Positions 7,401-56,157 of a stretch of DNA of 64,000 bases are shown piece after piece. The stretch's first letter is position 1, and every line of letters starts with the position of its first letter. The notes beneath the pieces are model-generated. The model did not search any database and had not been told where the DNA came from. It saw only the letters and a program-made list of their open reading frames with translations. The position numbers were made by a program, and so were the translations under genes. Source of the DNA: Antechinus flavipes (taxonomy: Eukaryota); assembly GCF_016432865.1 (NCBI RefSeq), contig NC_067400.1, positions 615,970,001 to 616,034,000 on the forward strand, written 5' to 3'.

Positions 7401-10400
7401 TTCTGCTCCCTGACGCGCTCCCATCTCCTGTGCAGGTAGTGAAGGTGAAGCCCAATGACAAGGACGCCAAGATGAAGTACCAGGAGTGCAACAAGATCGT
7501 GAGGCAGAAGGCGTTTGAGCGCGCCATCGCCGGGGACGAGCACAAGCGCTCGGTCGTGGACTCCCTGGACATCGAGAGCATGAGTGAGTCGCGCGCTGCC
7601 CCCGGGGCGGGGGGCTCGGCTTGGCAGCTGGGAGCCTCCCCTCGGGTGCTCCGTCTGCTCCCAGGGGCTCCTCCCCTCCCCTCTCGCCTTCCCAGGGACA
7701 GCCAGGCCTGGGCCTGCCCATGTGGTGTCCCCGAGACAGGGCAGCCAGGGGAGCTCGGGTGGAGGGGCCGCCCGTCCTTCTCCCTGTGGGCCCCCACCCC
7801 GCTCCCTCGCCCTCTGCCCCCGCTCCTAGGTGGCCCGGGGTGCCACGGGCGAGAGCCCGGCTCTTGGGCCCCATCCCTGGCTCTGCACTGAACCCTTGCT
7901 GCGGCCTCAGGTGGCCCTCCCCGCTGGCGCTCCGGGGGGTCCCTGACAGAGCCCCCGGCCCACGAGGGGGATTTTTCTCCCGGGATCCCCGCGTTCCGCC
8001 TCTGTTCTCACTTTGTTGGTGTCTCCCTCCTGGTTCTGGGGGGAGAAGCAGGACCTCTTAGCATCTGGTTCTGTGTCGGGGCGTTGGCGATCCTGGGGCG
8101 GGCGGACCCTGTATCTTGGGATGGAGCGGCTGAGCCCGGGGGTGGCGGGGGGCAGGGCCCTCCTTCTGCAGCCGCCCCCCGGACCCTCTGCGGGGGGCCG
8201 CGCTCAGCCTCCTCTCGCAGCCCTGGTCCCCTCGCCCCCGGACTCCTCCATCTCCGGCCCTCTCTTCTCCTTCTTCCTTCCTTCCTGCCCTCACTTTCTC
8301 CATCCTTCCTCTGTCTCCAGGAGAAGGTCCCGGAGTCTCCTCTTGTTTGAACTTTGTTTCCTTTTACCTTGTGGTCGGGGTTGGGGCCTGACCGAGCCGG
8401 TCCGCTCCGCATTGTTAAGACATCCTCTGCTTTCTCACATCCGCTTCCCAGGGTCTAGCAGAACAACATCCTCTTCCCTGCCAAAAAAAGAACATCGGGC
8501 CGGCCCCGCTCCCTCCAGGTCTCTCGCCAGGGACCGCTGGGTAGCAGCACCCTGTGCGCTCTTCTTCCAGAACCGCTGGGTCTCAGAGATGGAGGGGTCC
8601 GGGCCCCCCAGGCATTCCCGAGCAGGCTCCTCCCCTCCTGCGGCAGGAAGCTCACCAAGAACCTGGGCTCCTTTTCTTCCCCTCCTGGCGCTGCTCCTAG
8701 TTCTGGCCTCTTGGGGCTGGTCCGTCCCCGGGCCGTCGTGCCCGGCCCGCTCCCTGCTGCCTGGGTACCCCCTGGGCCGGGGCCGGGCTCTGCGGTAGGC
8801 GGCCTTGTCCAAGACCGGCCCGCTCCGGCATGGAGCTGCGCGGGGCCCGGGATGATGCACTTGGAGAAGGAAGGGCCTCCACGCTCCCGAAGTGAGGAGG
8901 GAGGTGATCCGTATGGGGTGGGGGAGCGACGCCCCCAGACCCCAAATCCTTGTACAGGCAAAGGGACTGAATCCCAGGGATGGAAAGGACTGCGGGGCTG
9001 AGAGGCAGGACTCCGGCCTGGGCTAACCTGGCGCCCTGTAAACGCCGAGGAGACTTGGGGTGTCTGGGAGCTCCGCAGTGCTTCTGCTAAACTCCCTCCC
9101 AGGCTTCAGGAGGCACGTCTTAATTTCATGGTGCAGGGAGCCGGGGAAACACTAAAAACCCAAAGAGAGTCACGCGTCCGTGTTCTACTCTTAAGGAAGT
9201 TGAACCCAGCGGGCCAGTGAAAATGAACCTGATCTCAGAGACAAAGAAGCAGGCTGGGGGTGAGAGAGGCAGGGTGCAGCTCAAGCTCCTGCCTCGGGGG
9301 CACCAGTTAGTACCTCCTACATGCTGATGGGGATTCCGGGACTACAGCATTGAGCTCCCGCATCCTGCTGTTGGAAAAATGGAAACAGAGAAAAAGGTGT
9401 TGCCTAAGGTCAGGTCGGTGTTCGAGCCGGCGCTGAAATGCCCAGTCCGGGACCTGTTTTGCCACAGTCCCTCTGCCTTTATCCCACTTTTGACTTCTGT
9501 CCTTCCGGGCTGCAGAGCCTCAGGTATCTTAGCCTTTCCCTGAAAATCTCACAGGCAGGGACCAAGAAACCCAGGAGTTAAAATCAGCACTTGTTACTGG
9601 TGTACTTTGTGACCTTACGTTAGTTTCTTTCTCTCTCCGAACCTTACTTTCCCCACCTGCAGATTTAGGGGACTGGACCAGGTGATCCGTTAGCTCTTGC
9701 AGCTCCAGGAGTCCATGGGCCCATCATTCTAGCTTAAGAAAGACTGGTATTGCTTTTCCCACAGCTTTTTTAAAAAGGTGCTCTTTCCCCCCACTTCTGT
9801 GCCTTCCCAGGGGCTCTCCCAACCCTCCTGTCCCTCTAACCACAGGCTCTTCATTTAAGAACAGAGAGAAGATAGAATAAATCAACAAATTCTTTGCTCA
9901 TATATCTCAAAATCTGAGTTACTTAAAAGAGTTCAGTGGTTCTCTGTTCTCTAGATGATTTTTTAAAAATTTGTCAAATTTTTTTTTTTGTCATTTAAAA
10001 AAAAAAATTTATTTAATAATTACTTTATATCAACAGAATCCATGCCAGGGTAATTTTTTTACAACATTATCCCTTGCACTCACTTCTGTTCCGATTTTTC
10101 CCCTCCCTCCCTCCACCCCCTCCCCTAGATGGCAAGCAGTCCTTTACATGTTGGATATATTGCAGTATATCCTAGATACAATATATGTTTGCAGAACCGA
10201 ACAGTTTTCTTGTTGCACAGGGAGAATCGGATTCAGAAGGTAGAAATAACCCGGGAAGAAAAACAAAAATGCAGATAGTTCACATTCGTTTCCCAGTGTT
10301 CTTTCTTTGGGTGTAGCTGCTTTTGTCCATCATTTATCAATTGAAACTCAGTTAGGTCTCTTTGTCAAAGAAATCTACTTCCATCAGAATACATCCTCAA

Positions 10401-13400
10401 ACAGTATTGTTGTTGAGGGATATAATGATCTCCTGGTTCTGCTCATTTCACTTAGCATCAGTTCATGTAAGTCTCGCCAGTCCTCTCTGTATTCATCCTG
10501 CTGGACATTCCTTACAGAACAATAATATTCCATAACATTCATATACCACAATTTACCCAGCCATTCTCCAATTGGTGGGCATCCATTCAGTTTCCAGTTT
10601 CTAGCCAATACAAACAAGTCTACCACAAACATTCTGGCATATACAGGTCCCTTTCCCTTCTTTAGTATCACTTTGGGGTATAAGCCCAATAGAAACACTG
10701 CTGGATCAAAGGGTATGCACAGTTTTATAATTTTTTGGGCATAATTCCAGATTGCTCTCCAGAATGGTTGGATTCGTTCACAACTCCACCAACAATGCAT
10801 CAGTGTCCCAGTTTTCCCGCCTCCCCTCCAACATTCATCATTATTTTTTCCTGTCATCTTAGCCAATCTGACAGGTGTGTAGTGGTATCTCAGAGTTGTC
10901 TTAATTTGCATTTCTCTGATCAATAATGATTTGGAACACTCTTTCATGTGAGTGGTAATAGTTTCAATTTCATCATCTGAAAATTGTCTGTTCATATCCT
11001 TTGACCATTTATCAATTGGAGAATGGCTTGATTTCTTATAAATTTGAGTCAGTTCTCTATATATTTTGGAAATGAGGCCGTTATCAGAACCTTTAACTGT
11101 GAAGATGTTTTCCCAGTTTGTTGCTTCCCTTCTAATCTTGTTTGCATTAGTTCTGTTTGTACAAAGGCTTTTTAATTTGATATAATCAAAATTTCCTATT
11201 TTGTGATCAGTAATGGTCTCTAGTTCATCTTTGGTCACAAATTTCTTTCTCCTCCACAAGTCTGAGAGATAAACTATCCTATGTTCCTCTAATTTATTTA
11301 TAATCTCGTTCTTTATGCCTAGGTCATGGACCCATTTTGATCTTATCTTGGTATATGGTGTTACGTGGAATCCATGCCTAATTTCTGCCATACTAATTTC
11401 CAGTTATCCCAGCAGTTTTTATCAAATTTGTCAAATCTTGATGAAGTAAGGAGGCAAGGTCTAGTTGAGTCCTTCTTGGCAGCAGCCTCCCTCATGGCAG
11501 CTAGGATGTTGAGGAGCTCTTCTCTCTTCCCCTTGGCCAGGGTGTGAATTCCCACCCTTTTTTTTGGGGGGGTGAACTTAGGGACTCACTTATCCTTGGA
11601 GACTTTTACCAGTTCCACGGCCTACCTTTCATAAGGAGCAAAGCCACACACGTCCCGGATCTTATCTCTCACAGACTTGGTGTGTTTGGTCAACACCCAC
11701 AGCAATGGCAGCGTCATGGCTTCGGACCGTTCTTGGTGGTTCTTGGTGACTTTGTGGCCCTTGTTGAGGTCTGCCATGGTGCTATTGTAGCCCCAATAGC
11801 AGCCACAGCAGAAGGCGATGTATTTTTTTGTTCTTTTGCCTGTGACATAATCTTTTTCTTTTCTTTCTTTTTTTTTCACTCTATAAACAAGAAAGATTTG
11901 GTTTGCCTACATAGGTTTTTTTTTTTTTTTAATTATATAACTGTATTTACTTGTGTTCCTGTTGTTTGGGATGTTTGCAGATCAAGTAATCTTTCTTTTG
12001 TGCGTTTTTTGTTTTTGGAGGAATATCTCAAGTACCTCTCTTGTTGAAAGCTTATCTTGCATTGATCAATCAGTATATAGGATCTATTATTTTGGCTTAC
12101 AACTTGAGCGCCTTTTTCTTTTTGGAATATACTGTTTCCTTGTGTTCACTGATTTCCCATGAACATCAAATAATCTTTCCTTCATATTTAGAGAGCTCTC
12201 TTTTTGGCGGCTTGGCAGAATTTTTTGTTGTTTTTGTAACTTGAAATTCAGTCAACATATATATCCCTAGAATTTGAAGCATGTTTGTTTTCTCCTCTGA
12301 TGCCCATCTGTGGATTCTGTGTATTGTTGTCTGTACTCAGAATTTGGGACAGTTTTCTTTCTTTCTTTCTTTTTTAAATAACTTTTTATTGACAGAACCC
12401 ATGCCAGGATAATTTTTTACAGCATTATTCCTTGCATTCACTTCTGTTCCGATTTTTCCCTTCCCTCCCTCCACCCCCTCCCCCAGATGGCAAGCAGTCC
12501 TTTACATGTTAAATAGGTTGCAGTATATCCTAGATACAATATATGTGTGCAGAACCGAACAGTTCTCTTGTTGCACAGGGAGAATTGGATTCAGAAGGTA
12601 GAAATAACCCGGTTTACATTCATTTCCCAGTGTTCTTTCTTTGGGTGTAGCTGCTTCTGTCCATCCTTGATCAATTGAAACTGAATTAACTCTCTTTATC
12701 GAAGAGATCCATTTCCATCAGAATACATCCTCAAACAGTATCATTGTTGAGGGATATAATGATCTCCTGGTTCTGCTCATTTCACTCAGCTTCAGTTCGT
12801 ATAAGTCTCTCCAGTCCTCTCTGTATTCATCCTGCTGGTCATTCCTTACAGAACAATAATATTCCATAACATTCATATACGACAATTTACCCAGCCATTC
12901 TCCAATTGATGGGCATCCACTCAGTTTCCAGTTTCTAGCCACTACAAACAGGGCGGCCACAAACATTTTGGCACATGGGACAGTTTTCTTATGCCCTTGG
13001 CTGTTGTTTAGGCTTTTTGATTTGATGTTCTCTTTTGGAAGATCTGTGATCTGGAAGTTTTCTTTACATAGCCTCACTTCTATGGAATTCATGTGCTCTG
13101 TGAATGTAACCTCTCCTTTTTGCTTTTCTTCTGCCGAATTGTTTTCTATTTCAGTATTTTTGTGTTGAGGTTTTATTCTCTCAGAGCCTCTGTTGTGCTT
13201 TGGAGGAGTTTTTTGTCAGTTATTCATTTTTTCTTACTCAGCTATTTATGTTTTTAAATTCATTATGTTTGATTTCTGAGCTTCAAACTTTTATCTCTAT
13301 TTTGAATTATTCTGGAGTTGCTTCCTCCTGTTTTAGGATCTCGAGAGTACAGAGTTTTCCTTTTCTTTGGTTCATTTTCTTTAATGGTACAATATTTATT

Positions 13401-16400
13401 CATTATGCTTTAGATTTTCTTTAGGTTTTTAATACTTTTCCCTTTTTTTATAAAATAAATTTTAAAAAATTATTTTATTTTTAAAAAAAACCTAAGAAAA
13501 ATAGAAAACGATTACAAAACTAAATAAAACAAAATGAAAGAAGATTGTCTTGTGCTTGACAGAACATCAGGGAGGGTCCATATAACAGCAAATGACCAGC
13601 TTAAGAAAGTATTGAATTGTGTTCAGAAGTATCCATCTTTACTTCCTCATAGATTGTTCTTTGGTTCTTACTGTGCACCTTCTGCATTCTTTTTTGCCCT
13701 TCCACCCCTTACCACCCCCCAGCAGGCTAGAGTTAAGAATCCCTCTGTTTTTAGCATCTTCCCTGGCAGCTCAGTTGCTCCGGGGAGGGCACCTGTCCCC
13801 GAGCGGGCTTCTGGGCTCTGGGACTGGTTTCTCCTTCCTTCTTTGGCTTCCTCCCCTTCCATCGCTGGGCTGTGGGACGGAGTGCGTGGGGCCCGTGGGC
13901 TGCTGGCCCTTGTGAGCCCAAGCTTGGCTCCCTACGCCCCCGGTCTTCCTGTGGGGAGCCCCTGTCTCCCCGGGCTGGCTTCGGGCCTCCCTGCCTTTCG
14001 TGTGGCGGCCTGTTCGGCCCTTGGGGAGCCGCCCTTTGGGGCTGGGGCCGAGCTGGTTGTGGGGGTCCCCAGGCTCGCCAGGCACAGCTGTCACTGGCCA
14101 GAACGCGGGTCGTCAGCTCGGTGCAGGGACCCCGGGGCCCTCGAGCCTCCCCCGGCTTTCTGCCACGTTGCAGACCCTGCCTCGGGCGGCCTCTGGGAGA
14201 GCTCCGATGGTTGGGACGTCATTCGGCATTAACCTTCCTTAGCCGCTGTCCCTGCTGCTCCTCGTGCCCGCCCTGCCTGGCCTGGCACACGCTGCGGGCA
14301 TCCGCCAGCCCCTCCCACCCCCCCGGCCCCTTACGACAGCCGGGGTGTCGCGCTGTCTCCCACCCAGCAGCAGAGAGAAGGGCCCGGAGCCGGGAGGGAG
14401 GCCCCGCCGCGGGGGGGGGGGGGGGTCCGTGGAGGGCGCGCTGTCCCCCAGCGGGCTTCTGGGCTCTGGGGTCGCCCCTGCTTTCTTTGCAGTCCTGTGA
14501 ATTGGGTCTTTTGTCTTCTCGCCTGGTGCCGTGGGACGGGCCCTTGCATTGCCGGCCCAGGTCCTTCCGTTTCAGGAGGGGCTTTGGGAAAGCTCAATGG
14601 CGAGCGCTGAGTGGCCCCGGGCCCTCCCCCCGCAGCCTCCTTCAGACCCTTCGAGGGACCCCTGGCACCTGGTGCAGCCCAAGCCCTTTGCACGGCCTCG
14701 GGGGCCCAGCGCGCTCCTGGGCTCGGCCTCCGGGGCCTCCGGTCTGGCCTGGCCCTGCCCGGGCTGATGGCCGACGCCTGCCTTTGCCGGGGCTCTGGGG
14801 TCCGGACCCTCCTCCTCTGAGGGCCCCCCCCCTCTGGGCGCTGACCCCTCCCCCTCTGCCCCCAGCCATCGAGGACGAGTACAGCGGCCCCAAGCTAGAG
14901 AACGGCAAAGTGACCCTGCCCTTCATGCAGGAGCTCATGCAGTGGTACCGGGAGCAGAAGAAGCTGCACAGGAAGTGCGCCTACCAGGTGAGCCCGCCCG
15001 GCCCGGCCCTGCGAGGGGGGGGGTCACGGGGGGGAGAGGCGGGGCAGGAAGTGAGGCCTTGGGGCTCCCGTTCTGGGCCACAGCCAGGCGGGGGGTGCTC
15101 ATCGCTCCTTCCCCCCCCCCCCTCAGATTTTGGTGCAGGTGAAGGAGATCCTGTCCAAGCTGACCACGCTGGTGGAGACCACGCTCAAAGAGGTGCCTCT
15201 GTGTTTGGGGGCGGGAGCACCCGGGGGCGGGGCGGGGGAGGAGCCTTGGGGGCGGGGCTGCGCTGGGGCCGGCCGGCAGACACTTACCCGGCTTGGGTTT
15301 TGTCTCCCCTTTGCTGTCTGTCTCTTCAACCCCCTCCCCCCATTCTGACTGCCCCTCACCACATCTCTCTGTCCCCCTTTTGGGCCGTCTCGGCCTCTCG
15401 CCCGTCCCAACCCTGCGTCTCTCCTGCCTCTCCCCCCTGTCTCTCTCCTGTCTCCCCCTCTGGTCTCTGCCTCCGTCTGTCTCTGTGTCTCCCTCTTCCC
15501 TGACCTCTTTTCTTTCAGACAGAGAAGATTACAGTCTGTGGGGACACCCACGGCCAGTTCTATGACCTGCTTAACATATTTGAGCTCAACGGTCTGCCCT
15601 CAGAGACCAACCCCTATGTATCCTTTCTGGGCCCGAGCCGGGCTGCTCCGTCCCCGTGGGCACCGTCCCCCCCAGACCCTCCCCGCAGTCGGGCGATGGC
15701 CCCCGGCACGGCCTCCCCCCCCTCCCCCCCCCGGCCCCCGGCACAGCGCTCCCCCCGGCTCCCCCCCCCGGCCCCCTGCACGGCCCCCCCCCCCCCCCCC
15801 CCCCCTCCCCCCCCCGGCCCCCTGCACGGCCTCCCCCCCCTCCCCTGGCCCCCTGCACGGCGCTTCCCCCCCCCCCCCCCCCCCCCGCCCCCTGCACGGC
15901 GCTCCCCCCCCCCCCGGCCCCCTGGATGGGTCCCCTGCAACTTAGCGGTGTCCGGCCTGGTGCGTGGGGCCGCCGGCCCTGGGACCCCCATGGGAGCCTG
16001 ATGGGGACGGGGGGGCGGGGGGCGCCGGGCTCCCGCCCCTGCACGTTTTCCTGAGCCTCCCCGGCACAGATATTTAATGGAGACTTTGTGGACCGAGGCT
16101 CCTTCTCGGTAGAAGTGATCCTCACCCTCTTTGGCTTCAAGCTGCTGTACCCCGACCACTTTCACCTGCTGCGAGGTAAGCCGGAGCTGGGCGCGGGCAG
16201 AGAGGTGGGCGCCCGTGGAGGGCAGGGGCCAGAGCCGCCCGGCCCCTCCCCCAGCCCCGGCGGCGCCCAGAGCCCCGGGTTCCTCGAGAACGTCGCCGGG
16301 CCCTGCTCCCCCCGGGGAGGCGGGGCGCTCGTCCGAGCTCCCCGGGCGCGTCGGCTCCCTCCCCCGGCCCGGGCTCTGTACGGAGGGCCCGGGCGGCCCC

Positions 16401-17745
16401 CGCTCCGGCTCCGGCGTCGGCGCTCTCCAGGCCTTGGTAGTCAGATTCTCCGGTGACGCCCTAGTGGGGGTCCCGCCGAGGGCCGACGCCCCGACCCGTG
16501 CCCAGCCTTAACCTGCAGGCCTGTGAGCCAGGGTCTTCCCTCCATCCCTAAAATCCCCCAGGGAACCACGAGACAGACAACATGAACCAAATCTACGGCT
16601 TTGAGGGGGAGGTGAAGGCCAAATACACAGCCCAGATGTTTGAGCTTTTCAGCGAGGTATTTGAGTGGCTGCCCCTGGCCCAGTGTATCAACGGCAAGGT
16701 GCTGGTAAGCCTTTGTGGGGCAGGGGCAAGGGGCAGCCCTGGGGGAGCGGGGGAGGGAGGGGGGTGCCCTCACCACGCCTCCTGCCTCCCCAGATCATGC
16801 ACGGGGGGCTCTTCAGCGAGGACGGGGTCACCCTGGACGACATCCGGAAGATCGAGCGGAATCGGCAGCCCCCCGACTCCGGTGAGCTCCGCGGGCCCCG
16901 GGCACATCCCTGCCGTGGAGGGGGCTTGGGGCAGGGGGCGCCCGGGCCCGAGCCCACTAACTGCCCCTCTCTCTTCCCCGTCCACTCGCAGGCCCCATGT
17001 GCGATTTGCTCTGGTCCGATCCACAGCCCCAGGTCAGTGAGCGCTCGCCTCGCGCAGGGTCCCCGGGGGGCGGGGGGGGCCGGGGCCGGGGGCCGGATCT
17101 GAGGCTTCTCTCCTCCAGAACGGGCGCTCGGTCAGCAAGCGAGGCGTGAGCTGCCAGTTTGGACCGGACGTCACCAAGGCCTTCCTGGAGGAGAATCGGC
17201 TGGACTACATCATCCGCAGCCACGAGGTGAAGCCTGAGGGCTACGAGGTGGCCCACGACGGCAAATGCGTCACTGTGTTCTCCGCCCCCAACTACTGGTG
17301 AGGAAGCCGGGGCCCCCACCCCCACCCCGACCCCTCTGGGGCTGCCCCCGGGCCCTGCTGCCCCCACCCCCGCCGGGCCACCCCCTGGGCTCCCCTGGCC
17401 CTGCCCGCCTGACGGGCTGTTCCTTCCCGCAGCGACCAGATGGGCAATAAGGCCTCCTACATCCACCTCCGAGGCTCCGACCTGCGGCCCCAGTTCCACC
17501 AGTTCACAGCAGTGGTGAGTCCCGGGTGCCCTGAGCTCGTAGCTCTGGGTGAAGGCTGGGCAGGGGCCCGAGAGGGGTCAGGGGCCGGGGAGCAAAGGTC
17601 GGGGAGCACGGGCCGGGGGTCAGGTAAAGCGTGGGCAGGAGCCCGGAGGAGCCGGCCCGACAGGACTTCTGGTCTCCTGCAGCCTCATCCCAACGTCAAG
17701 CCCATGGCCTACGCCAACACATTGCTGCAGCTGGGGATGATGTGA
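1193..17745 (+). CDS. PPP5C: Serine/threonine protein phosphatase 5 (3 TPR + PPP catalytic domain), 13 coding exons, 499 aa, intact
   Basis: Exons join in frame: 1193-1313, 4674-4915, 7436-7583, 14866-14987, 15127-15192, 15519-15617, 16070-16175, 16562-16704, 16794-16881, 16992-17032, 17119-17297, 17433-17514, 17683-17745 (sum 1500 nt). All introns are GT-AG. The translation starts MAMAEGER, contains the GDTHG, GDFVDRG and RGNHE metallophosphatase motifs, and ends [20 protein letters not shown], as in mammalian PP5. Confidence 0.98.
1400..2560. repeat. Degenerate minisatellite in PPP5C intron 1 (alternating ~30-37 bp subunits)
   Basis: Recurring CTGCTGCCAGATAGTGAGCCAT(A/G)GGGAAATG and GTTGCCACATAGTGAGCCATATGAAGA. 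This explains the repetitive [15 protein letters not shown]-type ORFs. Confidence 0.85.
4343..4615. repeat. 43-44 bp G-rich minisatellite, about 6.3 copies, just upstream of exon 2
   Basis: Unit CTGGGGACCCTCGGGCCCGTCCCGGAGGCCTGGGGGGGAGGGG starts at 4343, 4386, 4429, 4473, 4516, 4560, 4603. Confidence 0.95.
4674..4915 (+). CDS. PPP5C: PPP5C exon 2 (TPR1-3)
   Basis: ccatccag|GC AAG GAC TAC; [18 protein letters not shown]...ALRDYET; donor ACG|GTGAGC; 242 nt. Confidence 0.97.
7436..7583 (+). CDS. PPP5C: PPP5C exon 3
   Basis: tgtgcag|[20 protein letters not shown]...LDIESM; donor GA|GTGAGT; 148 nt. Confidence 0.97.
9980..11427 (-). mobile_element. 5'-truncated young L1 (ORF2 C-terminus + 3'UTR), antisense in intron 3
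   Basis: ORF 10384-11391 is the L1 ORF2 end ([24 protein letters not shown]). The T-run tail is at 9980, and a 13-bp TSD AAATTTGTCAAAT lies at 9967-9979 and 11424-11436. Confidence 0.95.
11466..11816 (-). pseudogene. RPL36: Processed pseudogene of 60S ribosomal protein L36
   Basis: Intronless [10 protein letters not shown]...[23 protein letters not shown]...KVSKDK*...[20 protein letters not shown]. It has two in-frame stops, a frameshift at a C/A run and a lost stop codon (TCA). ATG at 11777. Confidence 0.93.
11890..13400 (-). mobile_element. Old decayed L1 (ORF1-region) fragment hosting the 12360-12975 insertion
   Basis: T-rich sequence resembling the antisense of marsupial L1 ORF1 (ttttggaatat..., gagcttcaaac...); boundaries approximate. 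Confidence 0.45.
12360..12975 (-). mobile_element. 5'-truncated young L1 3' end
   Basis: ORF2 tail 12718-13092 + 3'UTR; perfect 15-bp TSD TGGGACAGTTTTCTT at 12345-12359 and 12976-12990. Confidence 0.95.
14866..14987 (+). CDS. PPP5C: PPP5C exon 4
   Basis: [40 protein letters not shown]; cccag| and |GTGAGC; 122 nt. Confidence 0.97.
15127..15192 (+). CDS. PPP5C: PPP5C exon 5
   Basis: [22 protein letters not shown]; 66 nt; ctcag| and |GTGCCT. Confidence 0.96.
15519..15617 (+). CDS. PPP5C: PPP5C exon 6
   Basis: [33 protein letters not shown]; followed by the U12-type donor GTATCCTTT; 99 nt. Confidence 0.97.
15618..16069 (+). other. U12-type (minor spliceosome) GT-AG intron 6 of PPP5C
   Basis: The 5' splice site GTATCCTTT matches the U12 consensus. 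A branch-like TTTTCCTGAGC lies at 16046-16056, with its A (16054) 15 nt before the AG, and there is no long polypyrimidine tract. Confidence 0.9.
15660..15925. repeat. C-rich low-complexity tandem repeat within U12 intron 6
   Basis: About 7 units of CCCC(T/G)GCACGGC + long C runs. Confidence 0.85.
16070..16175 (+). CDS. PPP5C: PPP5C exon 7
   Basis: [35 protein letters not shown]; donor G|GTAAGC; 106 nt. Confidence 0.97.
16562..16704 (+). CDS. PPP5C: PPP5C exon 8
   Basis: [21 protein letters not shown]...CINGKVL; 143 nt. Confidence 0.97.
16794..16881 (+). CDS. PPP5C: PPP5C exon 9
   Basis: [29 protein letters not shown]; 88 nt. Confidence 0.97.
16992..17032 (+). CDS. PPP5C: PPP5C exon 10
   Basis: [13 protein letters not shown]; 41 nt. 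Confidence 0.96.
17119..17297 (+). CDS. PPP5C: PPP5C exon 11
   Basis: [38 protein letters not shown]...VFSAPNY; 179 nt. Confidence 0.97.
17433..17514 (+). CDS. PPP5C: PPP5C exon 12
   Basis: [27 protein letters not shown]; 82 nt. Confidence 0.97.
17683..17745 (+). CDS. PPP5C: PPP5C exon 13 (coding part, to TGA)
   Basis: [20 protein letters not shown]; 63 nt. Confidence 0.97.
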   Translation, partial: PHPNVKPMAYANTLLQLGMM

Positions 17746-18235
17746 GGGGGACGCAGGGGCCTGGGCGGAGGCTCCCCTGGAGCCGGGCGCCGGCCCAGCC
17801 CTCGCTCCCAGCAGGAGGCTGGCCTGGCCCAGAAGTTGGAGACCCGAGGAGTTCCACCTGCTTTTACTTTGTAAACTTTGTATTTATTCCCCCACTTTGG
17901 TTCAAGGGGTCTGCATCCCCAGGACGATGGGCATTTGTGGGCTGGGGCTTCTGGGGGCTTGCTGCCCCAGGGCATTCTGGGAGGAGGCGGCGAGAGCTGG
18001 GGGAGGGAGAAGGGCAGGGCCAGGGGAGCCGCTCCCACCCCCTTCGTTTGCATGGCTCTGCCCCCTTTCCACCCATCACTGAAGCAATAGGCCCCATGGA
18101 GGGGCTGGGGGTCAGGGGTCCTCTCTGCTCAATCCACCAAGGGCTCTTGGTCTACTGGAGCCCCCCAGGCAGGGGCCGAGAGCCAGGCCCGCCCAGAGCC
18201 CTCCCCGCCCCACCCAAGCTATTTTACTGTCTGTA

Positions 18236-18255
18236 ATTAAATATGTTAAAATAAA
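18236..18255 (+). terminator. PPP5C polyadenylation signals
   Basis: ATTAAA 18236-18241 and AATAAA 18250-18255 in an AT-rich patch about 500 nt after the stop. Confidence 0.85.
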
Positions 18256-18506
18256 GTCATTATTGTAAACCAGCCTGGCTGGGGAAGAATCAGACCTTCC
18301 TGTCCGCTTCTTTCCCGCGGGCCGCTGGGGGGCTGGGAGTGACCCCCGAGGTCGGGAGCCCCAGAGGGGGAGGGGCTGGAGAGCAGATCCCCGCCCTCAG
18401 GAGGAGCCCAGGCCCCTCCCACTGCGGCAGGGGTTATGAGGGGGCCCCAGGCCCGGGCCTGCTGCCCCTCCCCATCAATCCCTGGGGATCCGCCCTGTCT
18501 GGGCCC

Positions 18507-18520
18507 CCACAAGGGGGCGC
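18507..18520 (+). promoter_or_regulatory. CTCF-like motif 3' of PPP5C
   Basis: CCACAAGGGGGCGC vs consensus CCASYAGRKGGCRS (13/14). Confidence 0.55.
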
Positions 18521-18918
18521 TCCGGCCTCCTCCTGGGCCTTGATGGCTGCTGCCCCCACCCACTCTCCCCCAGCCAACAACAGGTCGGGGGACGGCCCCT
18601 GCCCTATGTGAGGGCCGCCGGCCCTCCCAGCCCAGGCTGGGTCAGAGCAGCCGTTGGGGCCAGAAGCTGAGAGGAGGAGTCTCACAGGGCTCCGAGGGGA
18701 TGGAGGAGACCCGGTCCCCTAGTCCAGGGGGTGATTTCTGGGTTCCATGGGACTGATCTAATCTCACAGATAGTGGTTCCCTAGTGACACCATTGGCTTA
18801 TGCTCCAGGCCGGGGCCTCCCTCAGGTTCGTGAGAGGCAGAGAAGGCAAAGGAAGGGGGCGGCTGGGAGCTCAGGCTCTGGGAGCCAAGGGGGGATTCAG
18901 GCCTCCTTCGGTCAGGTT

Positions 18919-35565: not shown

Positions 35566-36988
35566 TTTTTTTAAAAAATTTTATAATAACTTTTTATTGA
35601 CAGAACTCATGCCAGGGTAATTTTTTACAACATTATCCCTTGCACTCACTTCTGTTCTGACTTTTCCCCTCCCTCCCTCCACCCCCTCCCCCAGATGGCA
35701 AGCAGTCCTATACATGTTAAATAGGTTGCAGTATATCCTAGATAGAATATATGTTTGCAGAACCGAACAGTTCTCTTGTTGCACAGGGAGAATTGGATTC
35801 AGAAGGTAAAAATAACCCAGGAAGAAAAACAAAAATGCAAGCAGTTTATATTCATTTCCCAGTGTTCTTTCTTTGGGTGTAGCTGCTTCTGTCCATCTTT
35901 GATCAATTAAGGCTCTCTTTATCGAAGAGGTCCACTTCCATCAGAATACATCCTCATACAGTATCATTGTTGAAGTATATAACGATCTCCTGGTTCTGCT
36001 CATTTCACTCAGCATCAGTTCATGTAAGTCTGTCCAAGCCTCTTTGTATTCATCCTGCTGGTCATTTCTTACAGAACAATTATATTCCATAACATTCATA
36101 TACCACAATTTACCCAGCCATTCTCCAATTGATGGGCATCCATTCATTTTCCAGTTTCTAGCCACGACAAACAGGGCTGCCACAAACATTTTGGCACATA
36201 CAGGTCCCTTTCCTTTCTTTAGTATTTCTTTGGGATATAAGCCCATGCTGGATCAAAGGGTATGCACTGTTTGATAATTTTTGGGCATAATTCCAGATTG
36301 CTCTCCAGAATGGTTGGATTCGTTCACAACTCCACCAACAATGCATCAGTGTCCCAGTTTTCCCGCCTCCCCTCCAACATTCATCATTATTTTTTCCTGT
36401 CATCTTAGCCGATCTGACAGGTGTGTAGTGGTATCTCAGAATTGTCTTAATTTGCATTTCTCTGATCAATAATGATTTGGAACACTCTTTCATATGAGTG
36501 GTAATAGTTTCAATTTCATCATCTGAAAATTGTCTATTCATATCCTTTGACCATTGATCAATTGGAGAATGGTTTGATTTCTTATAAATTAGAATCAATT
36601 CTCTATATATTTTGGAAATGAGGCTTTATCAGAACCTTTAACTGTGAAGATGTTTTCCCAGTTTGTTGCTTCCCTTCTAATCTTGTTTGCATTAGTTTTG
36701 TTTGTACAAAGGCTTTTTAATTTGATATAATCAAAATTTCCTATTTTGTGATCAGTAATGGTCTCTAGTTCATCTTTGGTCACAAATTTCTTTCTCCTCC
36801 ACAAGTCTGAGAGATAAACTATCCTCTGTTCCTCTAATTTATTTATAATACTGTTCTTTATGCCTAAATCATGGACCCATTTTGATCTTATCTTGGTATA
36901 TGGTGTTAAGTGTGGGTCCATGTCTAATTTCTGCCATACTAATTTCCAGTTATCCCAGCAGTTTTTATCAAATAATGAATTCTTAGCC
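35566..36988 (-). mobile_element. 5'-truncated young L1 (frameshifted ORF2 end + 3'UTR)
   Basis: ORF2 pieces 35941-36921; perfect 16-bp TSD TATGCAAAACATTTCT at 35550-35565 and 36989-37004. Confidence 0.95.
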
Positions 36989-43291: not shown

Positions 43292-43482
43292 CAGGGGTCC
43301 TCAAACTTTTTAAACAGGGGGCCAGTTCACTGTCCCTCAGACTGTTGGAGGGCTAGACTCTAGTAAAAACAAAAACTTTGTTTTGTGGGCCTTTAAATAA
43401 AGAAACTTCATAGCCCTAGGTGAGGGGGATAAACGTCCTCAGCTGCTGCATCTGGCCTGCGGCCGTAGTTTGAGGACCCCTG
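43292..43482. mobile_element. Non-autonomous hAT-Charlie MITE (OposCharlie1/OC1-like), 191 bp
   Basis: Perfect 16-bp terminal inverted repeats CAGGGGTCCTCAAACT / AGTTTGAGGACCCCTG; no 8-bp TSD discernible. Confidence 0.85.
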
Positions 43483-52686: not shown

Positions 52687-53402
52687 CCTTGTCTTATTCA
52701 TCTGGAGAAAGAAAAACCCTCAAGGTTACTCTCATTTGAAAGGATTCTGGGAATAGGACTCCCCCCTGCACCTGCTGTCATGACCATCACCATTTTATCA
52801 CCCTGGGGAAGGGAGCAGAAAGCAGAGAAGTTCAAAATCATCATTACTTGAAGGAGATTTTAAATCACAGAGTATCAGGGCTGGGAGGAACCTTAAAATA
52901 AGGAATATCAGAACTGGGAGAGGCCTGAGAACAGAAGATATGCAAACGGGGACATCTTCTAAGATCTACCCCGTCCAATCTCTTCATTTCATGGATGTTG
53001 CTGCCCAAGGTGTGGAAGAAACTTGCTCAAAGTCTTAACTCCCAGTCCAGGTCTCTCCAAGGTCCTTATCTCTTAAGAGGGATGTGAAACAGCAGCCAGA
53101 CCTCCCCCTCCTGGTTTCCTCAGCTCTCTCGAGAGGGTCACAGATCACAGATCTTCAGCTGGAAGGGTCCTCAGGGGCCGCTCAGTCCAGGTGAGGAGAC
53201 CAGACTCTGAGAAGGGTCTTGCCCAACGTCATACATTTAAGAATGGCAGAGCCAAGTTTTAGCCTAAGACCAAATCCAATATTGACTCCACTGTATCTAT
53301 TGGACTTCCATGCTCTTGGGGGAAGGGGCTTCAGGGCCCCACCAACAAGGAACTCTAAAAAGAAATGCCACACCCAAGGGATAGCTATAATCCGCCAGAG
53401 CC

Positions 53403-53408
53403 TTTATT
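53403..53408 (-). terminator. AATAAA overlapping the stop codon of the IGFL-like gene
   Basis: AGA AAA TAA AGG reads AATAAA across the TAA. Confidence 0.45.
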
Positions 53409-54666
53409 TTCTTATATACATGTCGCAGTCCTCCCTCTCTGTCTTCTTCTTATTCTTCAGGATGACAAAGAACTTCTCATGGTCAAAGCAGCAACGCTGA
53501 GTATCTCTGTTGAAGATGAAGTAGCCGCTCCAGGACCTCTCAGGACTGGGATCCCAGCCACAGCACTGATGGGTTTGGGGGTTGTAAGTCATACTTCCAC
53601 AAACTCTCCACTTTTGGATGACCCACATAAACTTAAGGTCTGTGAGAGATAAAGGAGAGTCTTGTCAGCTCTCAGCTGGATCCAGAACTTCTAGTCTCCT
53701 CCTTCCCCTTTAGATTTTTCTAACTCTTCTCTCCCTTAAATCACCATGGAATAGAGAATGACAGAGCTGGGAAGGCCTTTAGAAACCATCTAGTTTGGTC
53801 CAGTCATTACACAAGTGGAGAAACTGAGGCACAAAGTCACTATGGATCCTGGTCCCTGGCCATCACTTCCCGCCATGACCCCAAACTCCTTACCACTAAT
53901 ATCACAGACCTTTGTCCTTGGAACTTCCCATAAGAGTCTCATTCTGAGGATCAGTCAGCTGTCCCTCTAAGAAAGATGAGAACAAGAGGCATCCAGCTAG
54001 AAGGGAAAGAGAGAGGAGTAAGTGCCAGGGAACGAGAGAGATCAGGGTTGGTTGTATCTCCGTTTTGTTGGAAGGAGCTCCTAGTAATTAAAAAGCAATT
54101 GTCTTACAATGCATACTAAGGAAAATGGACTGGATGAGGAGGTAATAAGACAGTCACTGAGATAATGTGGCTCTAGCAATTTTGCTGCTCTATTAACTAG
54201 GAGTCTTGCCTCTTTCTGTTCACCCTTAGGTGGCGTTACTTCTGCCCATAATGTTTGGGATCAACTTTCTACTAACTTGATTATAAAGTACTCTTCTTGG
54301 AACTAGTAATTCTTGATCTTTCCAAATGTCAGGATGGAGATGGGGCGGGGAGAGATGAAGAAGAGGGAGAGAAGTTAGATGGGGAGCGAGGAGGGAGACA
54401 AAAAAAGAGAGAGATCGACAGAGACAGAGACACACACACAGAGATACACAGAAAAATAGACAGGCAGAAAGAGAGAGAGAAAGATACAGAGAGAAAGAGA
54501 GAGACAGAGACAGACAGACAGACAGACAGACAGAAAAAGAGACAAACAGACAGGAACAGGGAAACAAACACACAGAGAAAGAGAGAGACAGAGACAGAGA
54601 GATATACACAGAGAGATATACAGAAAATAGGCAGAAATAGAGAGAGAAAGACACAGAGTGAGAGAT

Positions 54667-54703
<37 letters not shown>

Positions 54704-56059
54704 CAGAGAGATATACAGAAAATAGACAGGCAGAAAGAGAGAGAAAGACACAGAGAAAAAGAGAGAGACAGAGACAGAGAGGTACACACAGAGAGATATA
54801 CAGAAAATAGACAGGCAGAAAGAGAGAGAGACAGACAGAGAGAGAGAGACAGACAAACAGAAATAGGGAGACACACACACATAGAAAGAGAGACAGAGAC
54901 AGAGACACGCACAGAGAGATATACAGAAAATAGACAGGCAGAAANNNNNNNNNNNNNNNNNNNNNNNNNNNNNNNNNNNNNNNNNNNNNNNNNNNNNNNN
55001 NNNNNNNNNNNNNNNNNNNNNNNNNNNNNNNNNNNNNNNNNNNNNNNNNNNNNNNNNNNNNNNNNNNNNNNNNNNNNNNNNNNNNNNNNNNNNNNNNNNN
55101 NNNNNNNNNNNNNNNNNNNNNNNNNNNNNNNNNNNNNNNNNNNNNNNNNNNNNNNNNNNNNNNNNNNNNNNNNNNNNNNNNAGGTGTGTGGTGCCATACA
55201 CCTTCCTCTTTTCTACAAGAAGATAAGAAGAAGGATGCTCTCAGGGAGGTTAGCAGTGGCAGTGAACATAGAAAGTTCAGAGGTGCAGTGAGGTCCTTCC
55301 TCCTCCTTCTCCTCCTGCCCCCAGCCTGTCCCAATAACTTTCTTCACTGAATTGTATCAGTAATACGAGGCTCAGCTTCTCCAAAGATCATAAAGGATCT
55401 CAAGGACCACATAGTTCAATCCTCTCCTTTTATAGATGAGGCAGCTGAAACTCAAAGAGGCTTGGCCAAGGCCGTATTGGTCGTGTGCAGCAGATCTGAG
55501 ATTCATAAGTTCATAGAATCACAGCCTTCAAGCCAGAAGAGAACTCAGGGGTCAGCTCAGCAACTTCTCACTTTTACCAATATGGAAGCTGATGCCTTTA
55601 GAAGCTAAGGATGTGTCCCAGCTCAAGGAGAACCTTTGGCTCTCAACCCAGCATTCTTTCCAGCACCAGCTTCCTCCTGCCTAGCCCCCCACAGCCCTGC
55701 CTCTTGAGCCCCAAGCCCCAGAACCACCCAGAGACTTGCCTTCTGCTTTTCTCTTCCAAATGCTGCCCCACCCTGCCCCTGTGGAAAGTACCACAAGCAA
55801 ACACCAGAAAGTCATTTTCTCCTGCACATCCCCTTCATCCAGATCCCCAAGACCCCAAGTAAGACATTCTGGATGCCCCAGTGAACTGCAAAATGGATCA
55901 TGTTTCCCACTACCTAACACCTCCCCAAGCCATCTGGAAGTAGCTAAAGAACCATGCTGCCCCCGTATCCCAGACTCCCTTAATTTGCCAAGACCGAGGA
56001 AGCCCAGGTGTAGGGCCCCACCGGCCAGGTTTACCCAGGAAGATGAATTGAAGAGCCAT
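53404..56059 (-). CDS. IGF-like family (IGFL)-type secreted Cys-rich protein, 115 aa; coding exons 56059-56035, 53996-53910, 53639-53404
   Basis: 25+87+236 = 348 nt, phases 1/1. Translation: MALQFIFLAGCLLFSSFLEGQLTDPQNETLMGSSKDKDLKFMWVIQKWRVCGSMTYNPQTHQCCGWDPSPERSWSGYFIFNRDTQRCCFDHEKFFVILKNKKKTEREDCDMYIRK. It has a signal peptide, CGxxxYNPxxxxCC, a second CC, FFVILK and a terminal C. Strong acceptors: ctctctttcccttctag and ctcctttatctctcacag. The exon-2 donor AAG|GTCTGT is weak. Confidence 0.7.
54385..54944. repeat. (GA)n/(GACA)n complex repeat with ~60-bp higher-order units, in intron 1 of the IGFL-like gene
   Basis: Recurring GAGACAGAGAGATATACAGAAAATAGACAGGCAGAAAGAGAGAG; runs into an N-gap. 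Confidence 0.92.
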
Positions 56060-56149
56060 GGAACTGGAAAGAAACTCCACTTCAGACTGTAGACACCTTG
56101 GGTTTGGGACCAGGTCTCAGCATTCTGCCCTCATCACCTTGAGCAATAC

Positions 56150-56157
56150 TTTTTATA
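56150..56157 (-). promoter_or_regulatory. TATA box of the IGFL-like gene
   Basis: CTATAAAAAG on the minus strand, ~98 nt upstream of the ATG (ttccATGG). Confidence 0.65.

Follow-up and report, generated by a model that had tools for sequence, protein, structure and literature searches.

The IGFL ligands are inflammation-induced skin cytokines which are still poorly understood and which signal through a receptor resembling the tumor necrosis factor receptor (TNFR). The limits of the family currently rest on a pattern of eleven cysteines and on a single Pfam model. A second group of proteins with related motifs, the galaxins, consists of long tandem arrays that occur mostly in invertebrates and fish. 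Here we analyze a gene on the minus strand of a 64,000-nucleotide stretch of DNA from the marsupial Antechinus flavipes (contig NC_067400.1; the whole stretch is called the window hereafter). With a probability of roughly 0.85, this is a real, transcribed protein-coding gene of three exons, the core of which is a cut-down IGFL domain and the product of which is a putative secreted ligand. We classify it as belonging to a six-cysteine branch within the IGFL superfamily, which is unannotated at this locus and unnamed elsewhere.

Read directly on the minus strand and joined by script, the three exons give an open reading frame (ORF) of 348 nucleotides (nt) for a precursor of 115 amino acids (aa; Table 1). 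Both introns have GT-AG borders and interrupt the frame in phase 1. Cysteines are located at positions 11, 51, 63, 64, 87, 88 and 109 of the precursor, and six of them follow the hydrophobic N-terminus in the order C, CC, CC, C. Exon 2 encodes the remaining part of the hydrophobic N-terminal peptide and a variable linker with the sequon N27-E28-T29. The entire cysteine core (C51, C63-C64, C87-C88, C109) is encoded by exon 3, together with a basic tail that varies. The gene had been proposed by a first-pass annotation made from the letters of the window alone, which described a spliced gene, complete from start to stop, whose small product begins with a signal-like N-terminus. This description is supported by the gene model and by the transcript of a relative (see below). 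All coordinates that it gave hold on direct reading; the joined exons confirm the six cysteines of the mature chain, and the list of ORFs indeed contains only a 74-aa piece of the gene (53404-53628).

Four sequencing runs were aligned to positions 53350-54050 of the window, a stretch chosen to avoid the assembly gap and the CT-rich tract of intron 1; the sequence of exon 1 came from a loose contig end. The relatives are coded A (run X1, ~93% alike), B (run X4, ~93%) and D and E (98%). Organisms D and E cover this entire stretch at 98% identity, organism B at about 93%. RNA-type runs of organisms A and B contain 13-30% of the sampled exon 3 words and almost no intron words; for organisms C, D and E, large runs reach 48-100%.

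The splicing evidence comes from run X1 (organism A, 47 million letters). It yields a single contig of 536 nt with a word depth of 8.2, which lies on 53358-53639 and 53910-53997. The contig omits exactly 270 nt bounded by GT..AG on the minus strand (CT..AC on the plus strand), that is, the junction 53910>53639, and the unique sequence of intron 2 has zero coverage in this run. At the exon 2 acceptor, the contig continues into a loose end of 72 nt which reads AGTTCTATGGCTCTTCAATTCATCTTCCTG on the minus strand and which is exon 1 sequence, with one mismatch in the 5′ untranslated region (UTR). The loose end and the 270-nt skip together place both predicted junctions in one transcript of the relative. 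Furthermore, the direct joining of exon 1 to exon 2 means that no sequence of the assembly gap at 54945-55181 is part of that mRNA. Given a depth of 8 in a run of 47 megabases, the contig cannot be contamination by genomic DNA. Thus, the two junctions which the first-pass annotation had listed for a search in RNA, 56035>53996 and 53910>53639, were both seen, in the RNA of a ~93% relative and not in that of this species. This transcript puts the gene beyond chance, as do the matches of its last exon among 1.8 billion representative proteins, with expectation values (E) of 1e-7 to 8e-17.

The relatives also show how the protein is constrained. The only indels are found in organism B, both within intron 2, and exons 2 and 3 are free of indels in A, B, D and E. 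When the listed differences are applied, the reading frame stays open without a stop and six of six cysteines are retained in all four relatives. In core codons 41-101, the listed differences among relatives comprise six distinct synonymous and no replacement changes; the probability of this split is 2e-5 (binomial, 83% replacement sites), and the core differs from its flanks with a Fisher value of 0.0012. The core of ~60 residues is under purifying selection. Replacements are confined to the linker (L22P, P25T, T29I, L30V, L39I/F and K40E, the first four in exon 2) and the tail (K102E/N, R106I/P, E107D, M111T), and organism B no longer has the NET sequon. The basic KNKKK tail, which the first-pass annotation had stressed, is the least conserved part among close relatives. 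Stops or frameshifts in close relatives, which it had named as an outcome that would speak against the gene, do not occur in exons 2-3 of A, B, D and E, and the core evolves under purifying selection as far as the listed differences go. Separately, codons 106-107 (53431-53436) form a mutational hot spot: codon 106 reads I, I, I and P in the relatives versus R in the window, with two to three base changes each.

These data bear on the idea that the gene is a transcribed relic, i.e. a decaying IGFL copy without protein function whose ORF is intact by chance. Decay could account for a score below the Pfam threshold, for the loss of three to five family cysteines and for a linker and a tail dense in replacement changes. 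In addition, differences to D and E are denser in the exons (10 in 323 nt) than in intron 2 (2 in 270 nt), and organism B offers only unspliced contig sequence. However, the core shows no replacement against six synonymous changes, the frame and all cysteines are retained in four relatives, the six-cysteine pattern is invariant in 15 placental sequences that are 47-82% alike, and splicing in organism A is clean. We consequently regard a relic as improbable.

When the exon-3 peptide was searched by word index against 5.8 billion proteins, zero candidates resulted; the gene and its close orthologs are absent from that collection. In the library of 1.8 billion representative proteins, phmmer found 17 matches at E ≤1e-3, which belong to three groups: tandem-repeat proteins, the 'IGFL family member 2' of Dromiciops gliroides (XP_043847004.1, E 2e-4) and short proteins with a C-CC-CC-C pattern. 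The Dromiciops protein itself reaches 47.9 bits (E 1.4e-12) with the Pfam IGFL model. The short proteins include P0002 (48% identity, E 1.2e-7), P0012 and P0013 (Camelus ferus EPY84977.1), and 48% is the highest identity to any database protein found. A profile search collected 19 six-cysteine proteins, whose sources are the camel, bats of four genera, the arctic fox and the grey seal, all laurasiatherian placentals, as well as unnamed ORFs of assemblies; the camel, bat, fox and seal proteins are named 'hypothetical' or 'uncharacterized'. A marsupial-specific ligand, as first suggested, is contradicted by these placental proteins with the same six-cysteine pattern.

The nearest relatives of the window protein are this placental six-cysteine family and the nine-cysteine marsupial IGFL2/3, and comparisons with hhalign place it between the two groups. 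It scores 98.9% (E 1.5e-17) against the placental six-cysteine family and 97.7% (E 1.4e-12) against marsupial IGFL2/3 (Dromiciops IGFL2 and tammar IGFL3), versus 95.1% (E 3e-8) for the two groups against each other. The window protein thus links the canonical and the six-cysteine forms, which makes it useful for an improved family profile. The IGFL relation that had been read by eye is upheld by the phmmer match to Dromiciops IGFL2, by the hhalign score and by an identical exon plan, and it falls short at the Pfam threshold. The window gene and its placental look-alikes constitute a conserved, expressed branch with only six cysteines which slips beneath the Pfam IGFL model; as a consequence, annotation misses the gene here and calls it 'hypothetical' elsewhere.

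In a different interpretation, the gene encodes a galaxin-like repeat protein instead of an IGFL relative. Galaxin_repeat (PF24748) is the top Pfam match (16.6 bits, E 0.0077, in one stretch), galaxin-like clusters are the top feature match to the window peptide in the Atlas, at a value of 0.87 that is below the meaningful level, and the top structural matches of a bat homologue are galaxin-like, with a template modeling (TM) score of 0.5. The window protein also resembles the repeat unit C(G)-x-x-x-Y-N/D-P-x4-CC, which gives weak matches to it and to genuine IGFLs alike. However, every score remains below threshold (the Pfam cut-off is 28), and a bona fide marsupial IGFL matches galaxin just as weakly in kind (E 0.0026). 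Moreover, an invertebrate repeat protein matches both models strongly (IGFL 3e-23, Galaxin 1.5e-20). Since the same proteins are matched by both, the IGFL and Galaxin models describe overlapping di-cysteine repeats. Finally, galaxins are arrays whereas the window protein consists of one unit only and follows the exon plan of the IGFLs; in terms of the repeat, it comprises one and a half units, followed by a C-terminal strand-helix and a lone last cysteine. A galaxin-like identity is, in our opinion, very improbable.

P0001 (360 aa) and P0005 (202 aa) are tandem repeats of the invertebrate type with Pfam IGFL at 3e-23 and Galaxin_repeat at 1.5e-20. Their unit reads CG..YNP....CC ... CG..YN.C...CC ... 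C. This arrangement suggests that the IGFL domain is a di-cysteine repeat of the galaxin type with two units, and that there is overlap between the two Pfam families.

As canonical IGFLs we compared two marsupial proteins (Dromiciops IGFL2 and Notamacropus eugenii IGFL3). Placental IGFLs carry eleven cysteines at regular spacing, two CC pairs among them (PMC3099712), as opposed to six in the window protein. Marsupial IGFL2/3 have nine, and both CC pairs are kept in the window protein, where the cysteines of the core are spaced C-x11-CC-x22-CC-x20-C. The first half-repeat, W-R-V-CG-SMT-YNPQ-THQ-CC, is intact and nearly matches its counterpart in the marsupial IGFLs. In the second half-repeat, the loop has its canonical length, but SG stands for CG and TQ for CS, by which two cysteines are lost. 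The third lost cysteine is the one preceding the conserved Trp, and it is replaced. Eight residues are invariant across the 18-sequence alignment: C13, G14, C25, C26, R48, C49, D70 and C71.

With the marsupial IGFLs, the window protein shares a signal-like leader, the two CC motifs, a near-identical CG..YNPQ..QCC stretch and the same three-exon plan. Its leader begins with MALQFIFL, similar to MALTFSIF in Dromiciops IGFL2. A coding exon 1 of 25 nt, two phase-1 introns and a last exon that begins 10-11 residues before the conserved Trp are common to the window, to the bat locus (L003, Phyllostomus discolor) and to the Dromiciops locus (L004). The identity of the window protein to Dromiciops and tammar IGFL is 32-37%. 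Mouse and human IGFLs are 21-38% identical (PMC3099712), and against this range the value is not unusual.

The placental six-cysteine family comprises Camelus ferus EPY84977.1 ('hypothetical protein CB1_000420005'), Phyllostomus discolor HJG60_009034, Myotis myotis A0A7J7SBZ9, Cnephaeus nilssonii QTO34_010255, Vulpes lagopus VULLAG_LOCUS9674 and Halichoerus grypus LOC144380324. Its members are 37-48% identical to the window protein and have in common with it the order C, CC, CC, C and the motifs W-x-x-CG, TQRCC, KFFVI and E-x-EDC-x-x-Y. The same three cysteines are missing as in the window protein, and full-length models of the bat gene show a clear hydrophobic leader as the window gene does. 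The family differs by a deletion of 12 residues of the inter-CC loop, which the window protein keeps, and by two extra residues ('KW') before the first CC. Two side observations concern individual members. In the fox copy, the second CC has become CS, and from its sequence this copy may be decaying. The seal and Pipistrellus 'isoform X2' models splice out the first half of the domain.

How the three groups are related can be read in two ways. Tentatively, and at less than even odds, we propose that the window gene is the marsupial ortholog of the placental six-cysteine genes. Both would then belong to an ancient, unnamed family of IGFL-related ligands that predates the marsupial-placental split and that has its own three-disulfide fold, possibly with a receptor other than IGFLR1 or with an antagonist role at IGFLR1. 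Alternatively, the window gene could be a plain ortholog of marsupial IGFL2/3 which lost three cysteines in its own lineage, the placental likeness being convergent. The N-terminal half (W..CG..YNPQ..QCC) fits this alternative, as it is nearer to the Dromiciops and tammar IGFLs, with 11 of 17 residues in common, than it is to the placental family. The long inter-CC loop, the absence of the placental 'KW' insertion, the likeness of the leader to the signal peptide of Dromiciops IGFL2 and the lack of a canonical IGFL elsewhere in this window point in the same direction. In a maximum-likelihood (ML) tree with invertebrate IGFL/galaxin repeats as the root, the window protein (on a long branch), the marsupial IGFLs and the six-cysteine proteins of placentals form a trichotomy, and this topology is compatible with orthology to marsupial IGFL2/3.

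Other features are harder to reconcile with such a loss in one lineage. The Dromiciops and tammar IGFLs are 65-69% alike, whereas the window protein is 32-37% identical to them. The same three cysteines are gone in the window protein and in the placental family, and both have TQRCC versus the canonical CS(E/Q)RCC. Furthermore, the spacer that follows the second CC is shorter in the window protein and in the placental family, and their C-terminal halves are far more similar. In our judgment, plain orthology to IGFL2/3 with convergence in placentals is less likely than not.

At the structural level, AlphaFold2 on the 18-row alignment produced a model with a predicted local distance difference test (pLDDT) of 69 and a predicted TM score (pTM) of 0.53, in which strands occupy 11-27 and 47-60 and a helix 67-75. 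With this query (pLDDT 69), a Foldseek search of Swiss-Prot models returned nothing significant, human IGFL2 being found at rank 4 (E 3.9, TM 0.28). A shape search of the ESM Atlas retrieved unrelated bacterial domains only. The structural comparison proposed in the first-pass annotation thus speaks neither for nor against the relation. Sequence searches of the PDB with the peptide and the family profile gave chance matches only (ceruloplasmin, E 0.7; designed propellers, E 0.3) and no IGFL structure.

From these elements, a working picture of the protein can be drawn. Residues 1 to ~20 are hydrophobic and most likely serve as a secretion signal; residues 3-18 are both hydrophobic and uncharged, and a second hydrophobic stretch is absent from the precursor. 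The leader would be followed by a fast-evolving linker with one N-glycosylation sequon. The six core cysteines are predicted to pair in three disulfides, with a pair of short beta hairpins and a helix at the C-terminal side arranged between them, and the variable basic tail would end the precursor. Once secreted, the product would act as an extracellular ligand. IGFL1, IGFL3 and mouse IGFL bind IGFLR1 at subnanomolar affinity, IGFL2 binds weakly and IGFL4 does not bind (PMC3099712), which makes IGFLR1 the first receptor candidate. The window protein may possibly bind this TNFR-like protein as well, although binding is not assured. An opossum Igflr1 transcript is on record (PMC4051688). The gene indicates which cysteines are dispensable and supplies a natural variant for receptor-binding tests.

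Several points weigh against the gene as a transcribed, secreted IGFL relative. The first concerns the Pfam IGFL model (PF14653), a check named in the first-pass annotation: the exon-3 peptide attains 11.7 bits (E 0.28) where the cut-off is 25, it is outscored by Galaxin_repeat, and the match is confined to peptide residues 4-29 and profile positions 2-26. Second, the evidence for splicing stems from one contig in one run of a related organism rather than of Antechinus flavipes, and contigs of organism B (run X4) are unspliced across intron 2 and across the exon 2 acceptor. Third, ten differences lie outside the listed ones to which the selection test applies, and the proteins of the relatives, that of X1 above all, are incomplete. 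Fourth, the −3/−1 residues before Q21 are L and G, which do not make a textbook cleavage site. Lastly, the AlphaFold2 model is moderate and without a significant match, human IGFL models included.

The coordinates of the gene are compiled in Table 1.

Table 1. Features of the six-cysteine gene in window coordinates. A slash marks an exon-intron boundary; exons are in capitals and introns in lower case.
Feature	Position	Strand	Details
TATA-like box TATAAAAA	56157-56150	−	91 nt upstream of ATG; read directly from the sequence
Exon 1, coding part	56059-56035	−	25 nt from ATG (MALQFIFL + 1 nt); ...CTGG/gtaaac; donor GT 56034-56033; phase 1
Intron 1	56034-53997	−	2038 nt as assembled; contains N gap 54945-55181 and CT-rich tract
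Exon 2	53996-53910	−	87 nt; acceptor pyrimidine tract ...ttctag/; donor /gtctgt; phase 1 at both ends
Intron 2	53909-53640	−	270 nt; GT..AG; carries dispersed-repeat fragment ~53743-53800
Exon 3, coding part	53639-53404	−	236 nt including stop; acceptor ...ctcacag/; TAA 53406-53404
AATAAA	53408-53403	−	overlaps stop codon; sole poly(A) hexamer within 400 nt downstream
3′ UTR	53403-53264	−	minimum extent, inferred from the contig of the relative (94 nt past 53358)

The contig of run X1 carries ~47 nt of 5′ UTR and at least 140 nt of 3′ UTR. Its 5′ end corresponds to ~56106, i.e. ~45 nt below the TATA box, and is compatible with a start site ~30 nt below the box; the TATAAAAA box is a TATA-like promoter candidate by its sequence. 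At the other end, the contig continues ~140 nt beyond the stop and hence past AATAAA, which is a candidate poly(A) signal.

The N gap lies entirely within intron 1, both of its flanks are noncoding, and no reading frame spans it. A CT-rich, low-complexity tract of ~550 nt (tctc and ctgtct units, ~54400-54944) abuts the gap on its downstream side in minus-strand reading and probably explains the break in the assembly. In intron 2, word depth rises from ~8-60 to 1200-2000 over the repeat fragment at 53743-53800 in each of the four runs, and many loose ends flank the fragment on either side. The depth of ~2000 at 53758-53781 in every run marks a repeat in this intron.

Turning to the neighborhood, PPP5C is encoded on the plus strand. 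Its 3′ half, with very short introns, is located at 14868-17298, and the tetratricopeptide repeat (TPR) region of PPP5 at ~14.87-14.99 kb. The motifs GDTHG (15540), GDFVDRG (16079), GNHE (16561) and SAPNY (17281) are recognizable, and pieces of the gene match solved PP5 structures over residues ~211-245 and 400-429 (E 1e-13 to 1e-19). The six-cysteine gene follows ~36 kb past the 3′ end of PPP5C and is read from the other strand, so that the two are arranged tail-to-tail. The human IGFL cluster lies on the HIF3A side of PPP5C, and the window gene beyond the PPP5C 3′ end, so that synteny is regional and not exact. The synteny argument of the first-pass annotation thus retains PPP5C, which is present, and is weaker than stated given the distance and the opposite strand. 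Within the window, HIF3A was not found, and no search was aimed at it.

Among the placental loci, those of camel (L002, Camelus ferus KB016707.1:54312-76465), bat (L003, and L006 of Cnephaeus nilssonii) and fox (L005, Vulpes lagopus) were considered. The camel, fox and bat six-cysteine loci are collinear with each other, and nothing outside the last exon is detectable between them and the window. The 10-kb flanks of the camel, bat, fox and Dromiciops loci have transposon-like matches only in the window and no shared flanking genes. The camel gene is adjacent to OPA3, an adjacency seen in camel only, whereas the window gene lies beyond PPP5C.

A scan of the window for the motif CG..YNP..CC and tblastn searches, for which the window protein, marsupial IGFLs and six-cysteine proteins of placentals served as queries, revealed no further IGFL-like last exon. 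The best other match, 43320-43463 on the plus strand, was considered as a second copy and rejected; with E 0.4 and an in-frame stop, it is too weak to be called a relic. Transposon-type ORF copies are located at 10381-11391 and 35938-36870, both on the minus strand, and share 55-75% translated identity with positions 17757-18700 of the L004 locus beside Dromiciops IGFL2. The ORF at 10384-11391 encodes 335 aa and has no Pfam match. These copies look like a dispersed marsupial repeat rather than a gene of the locus.

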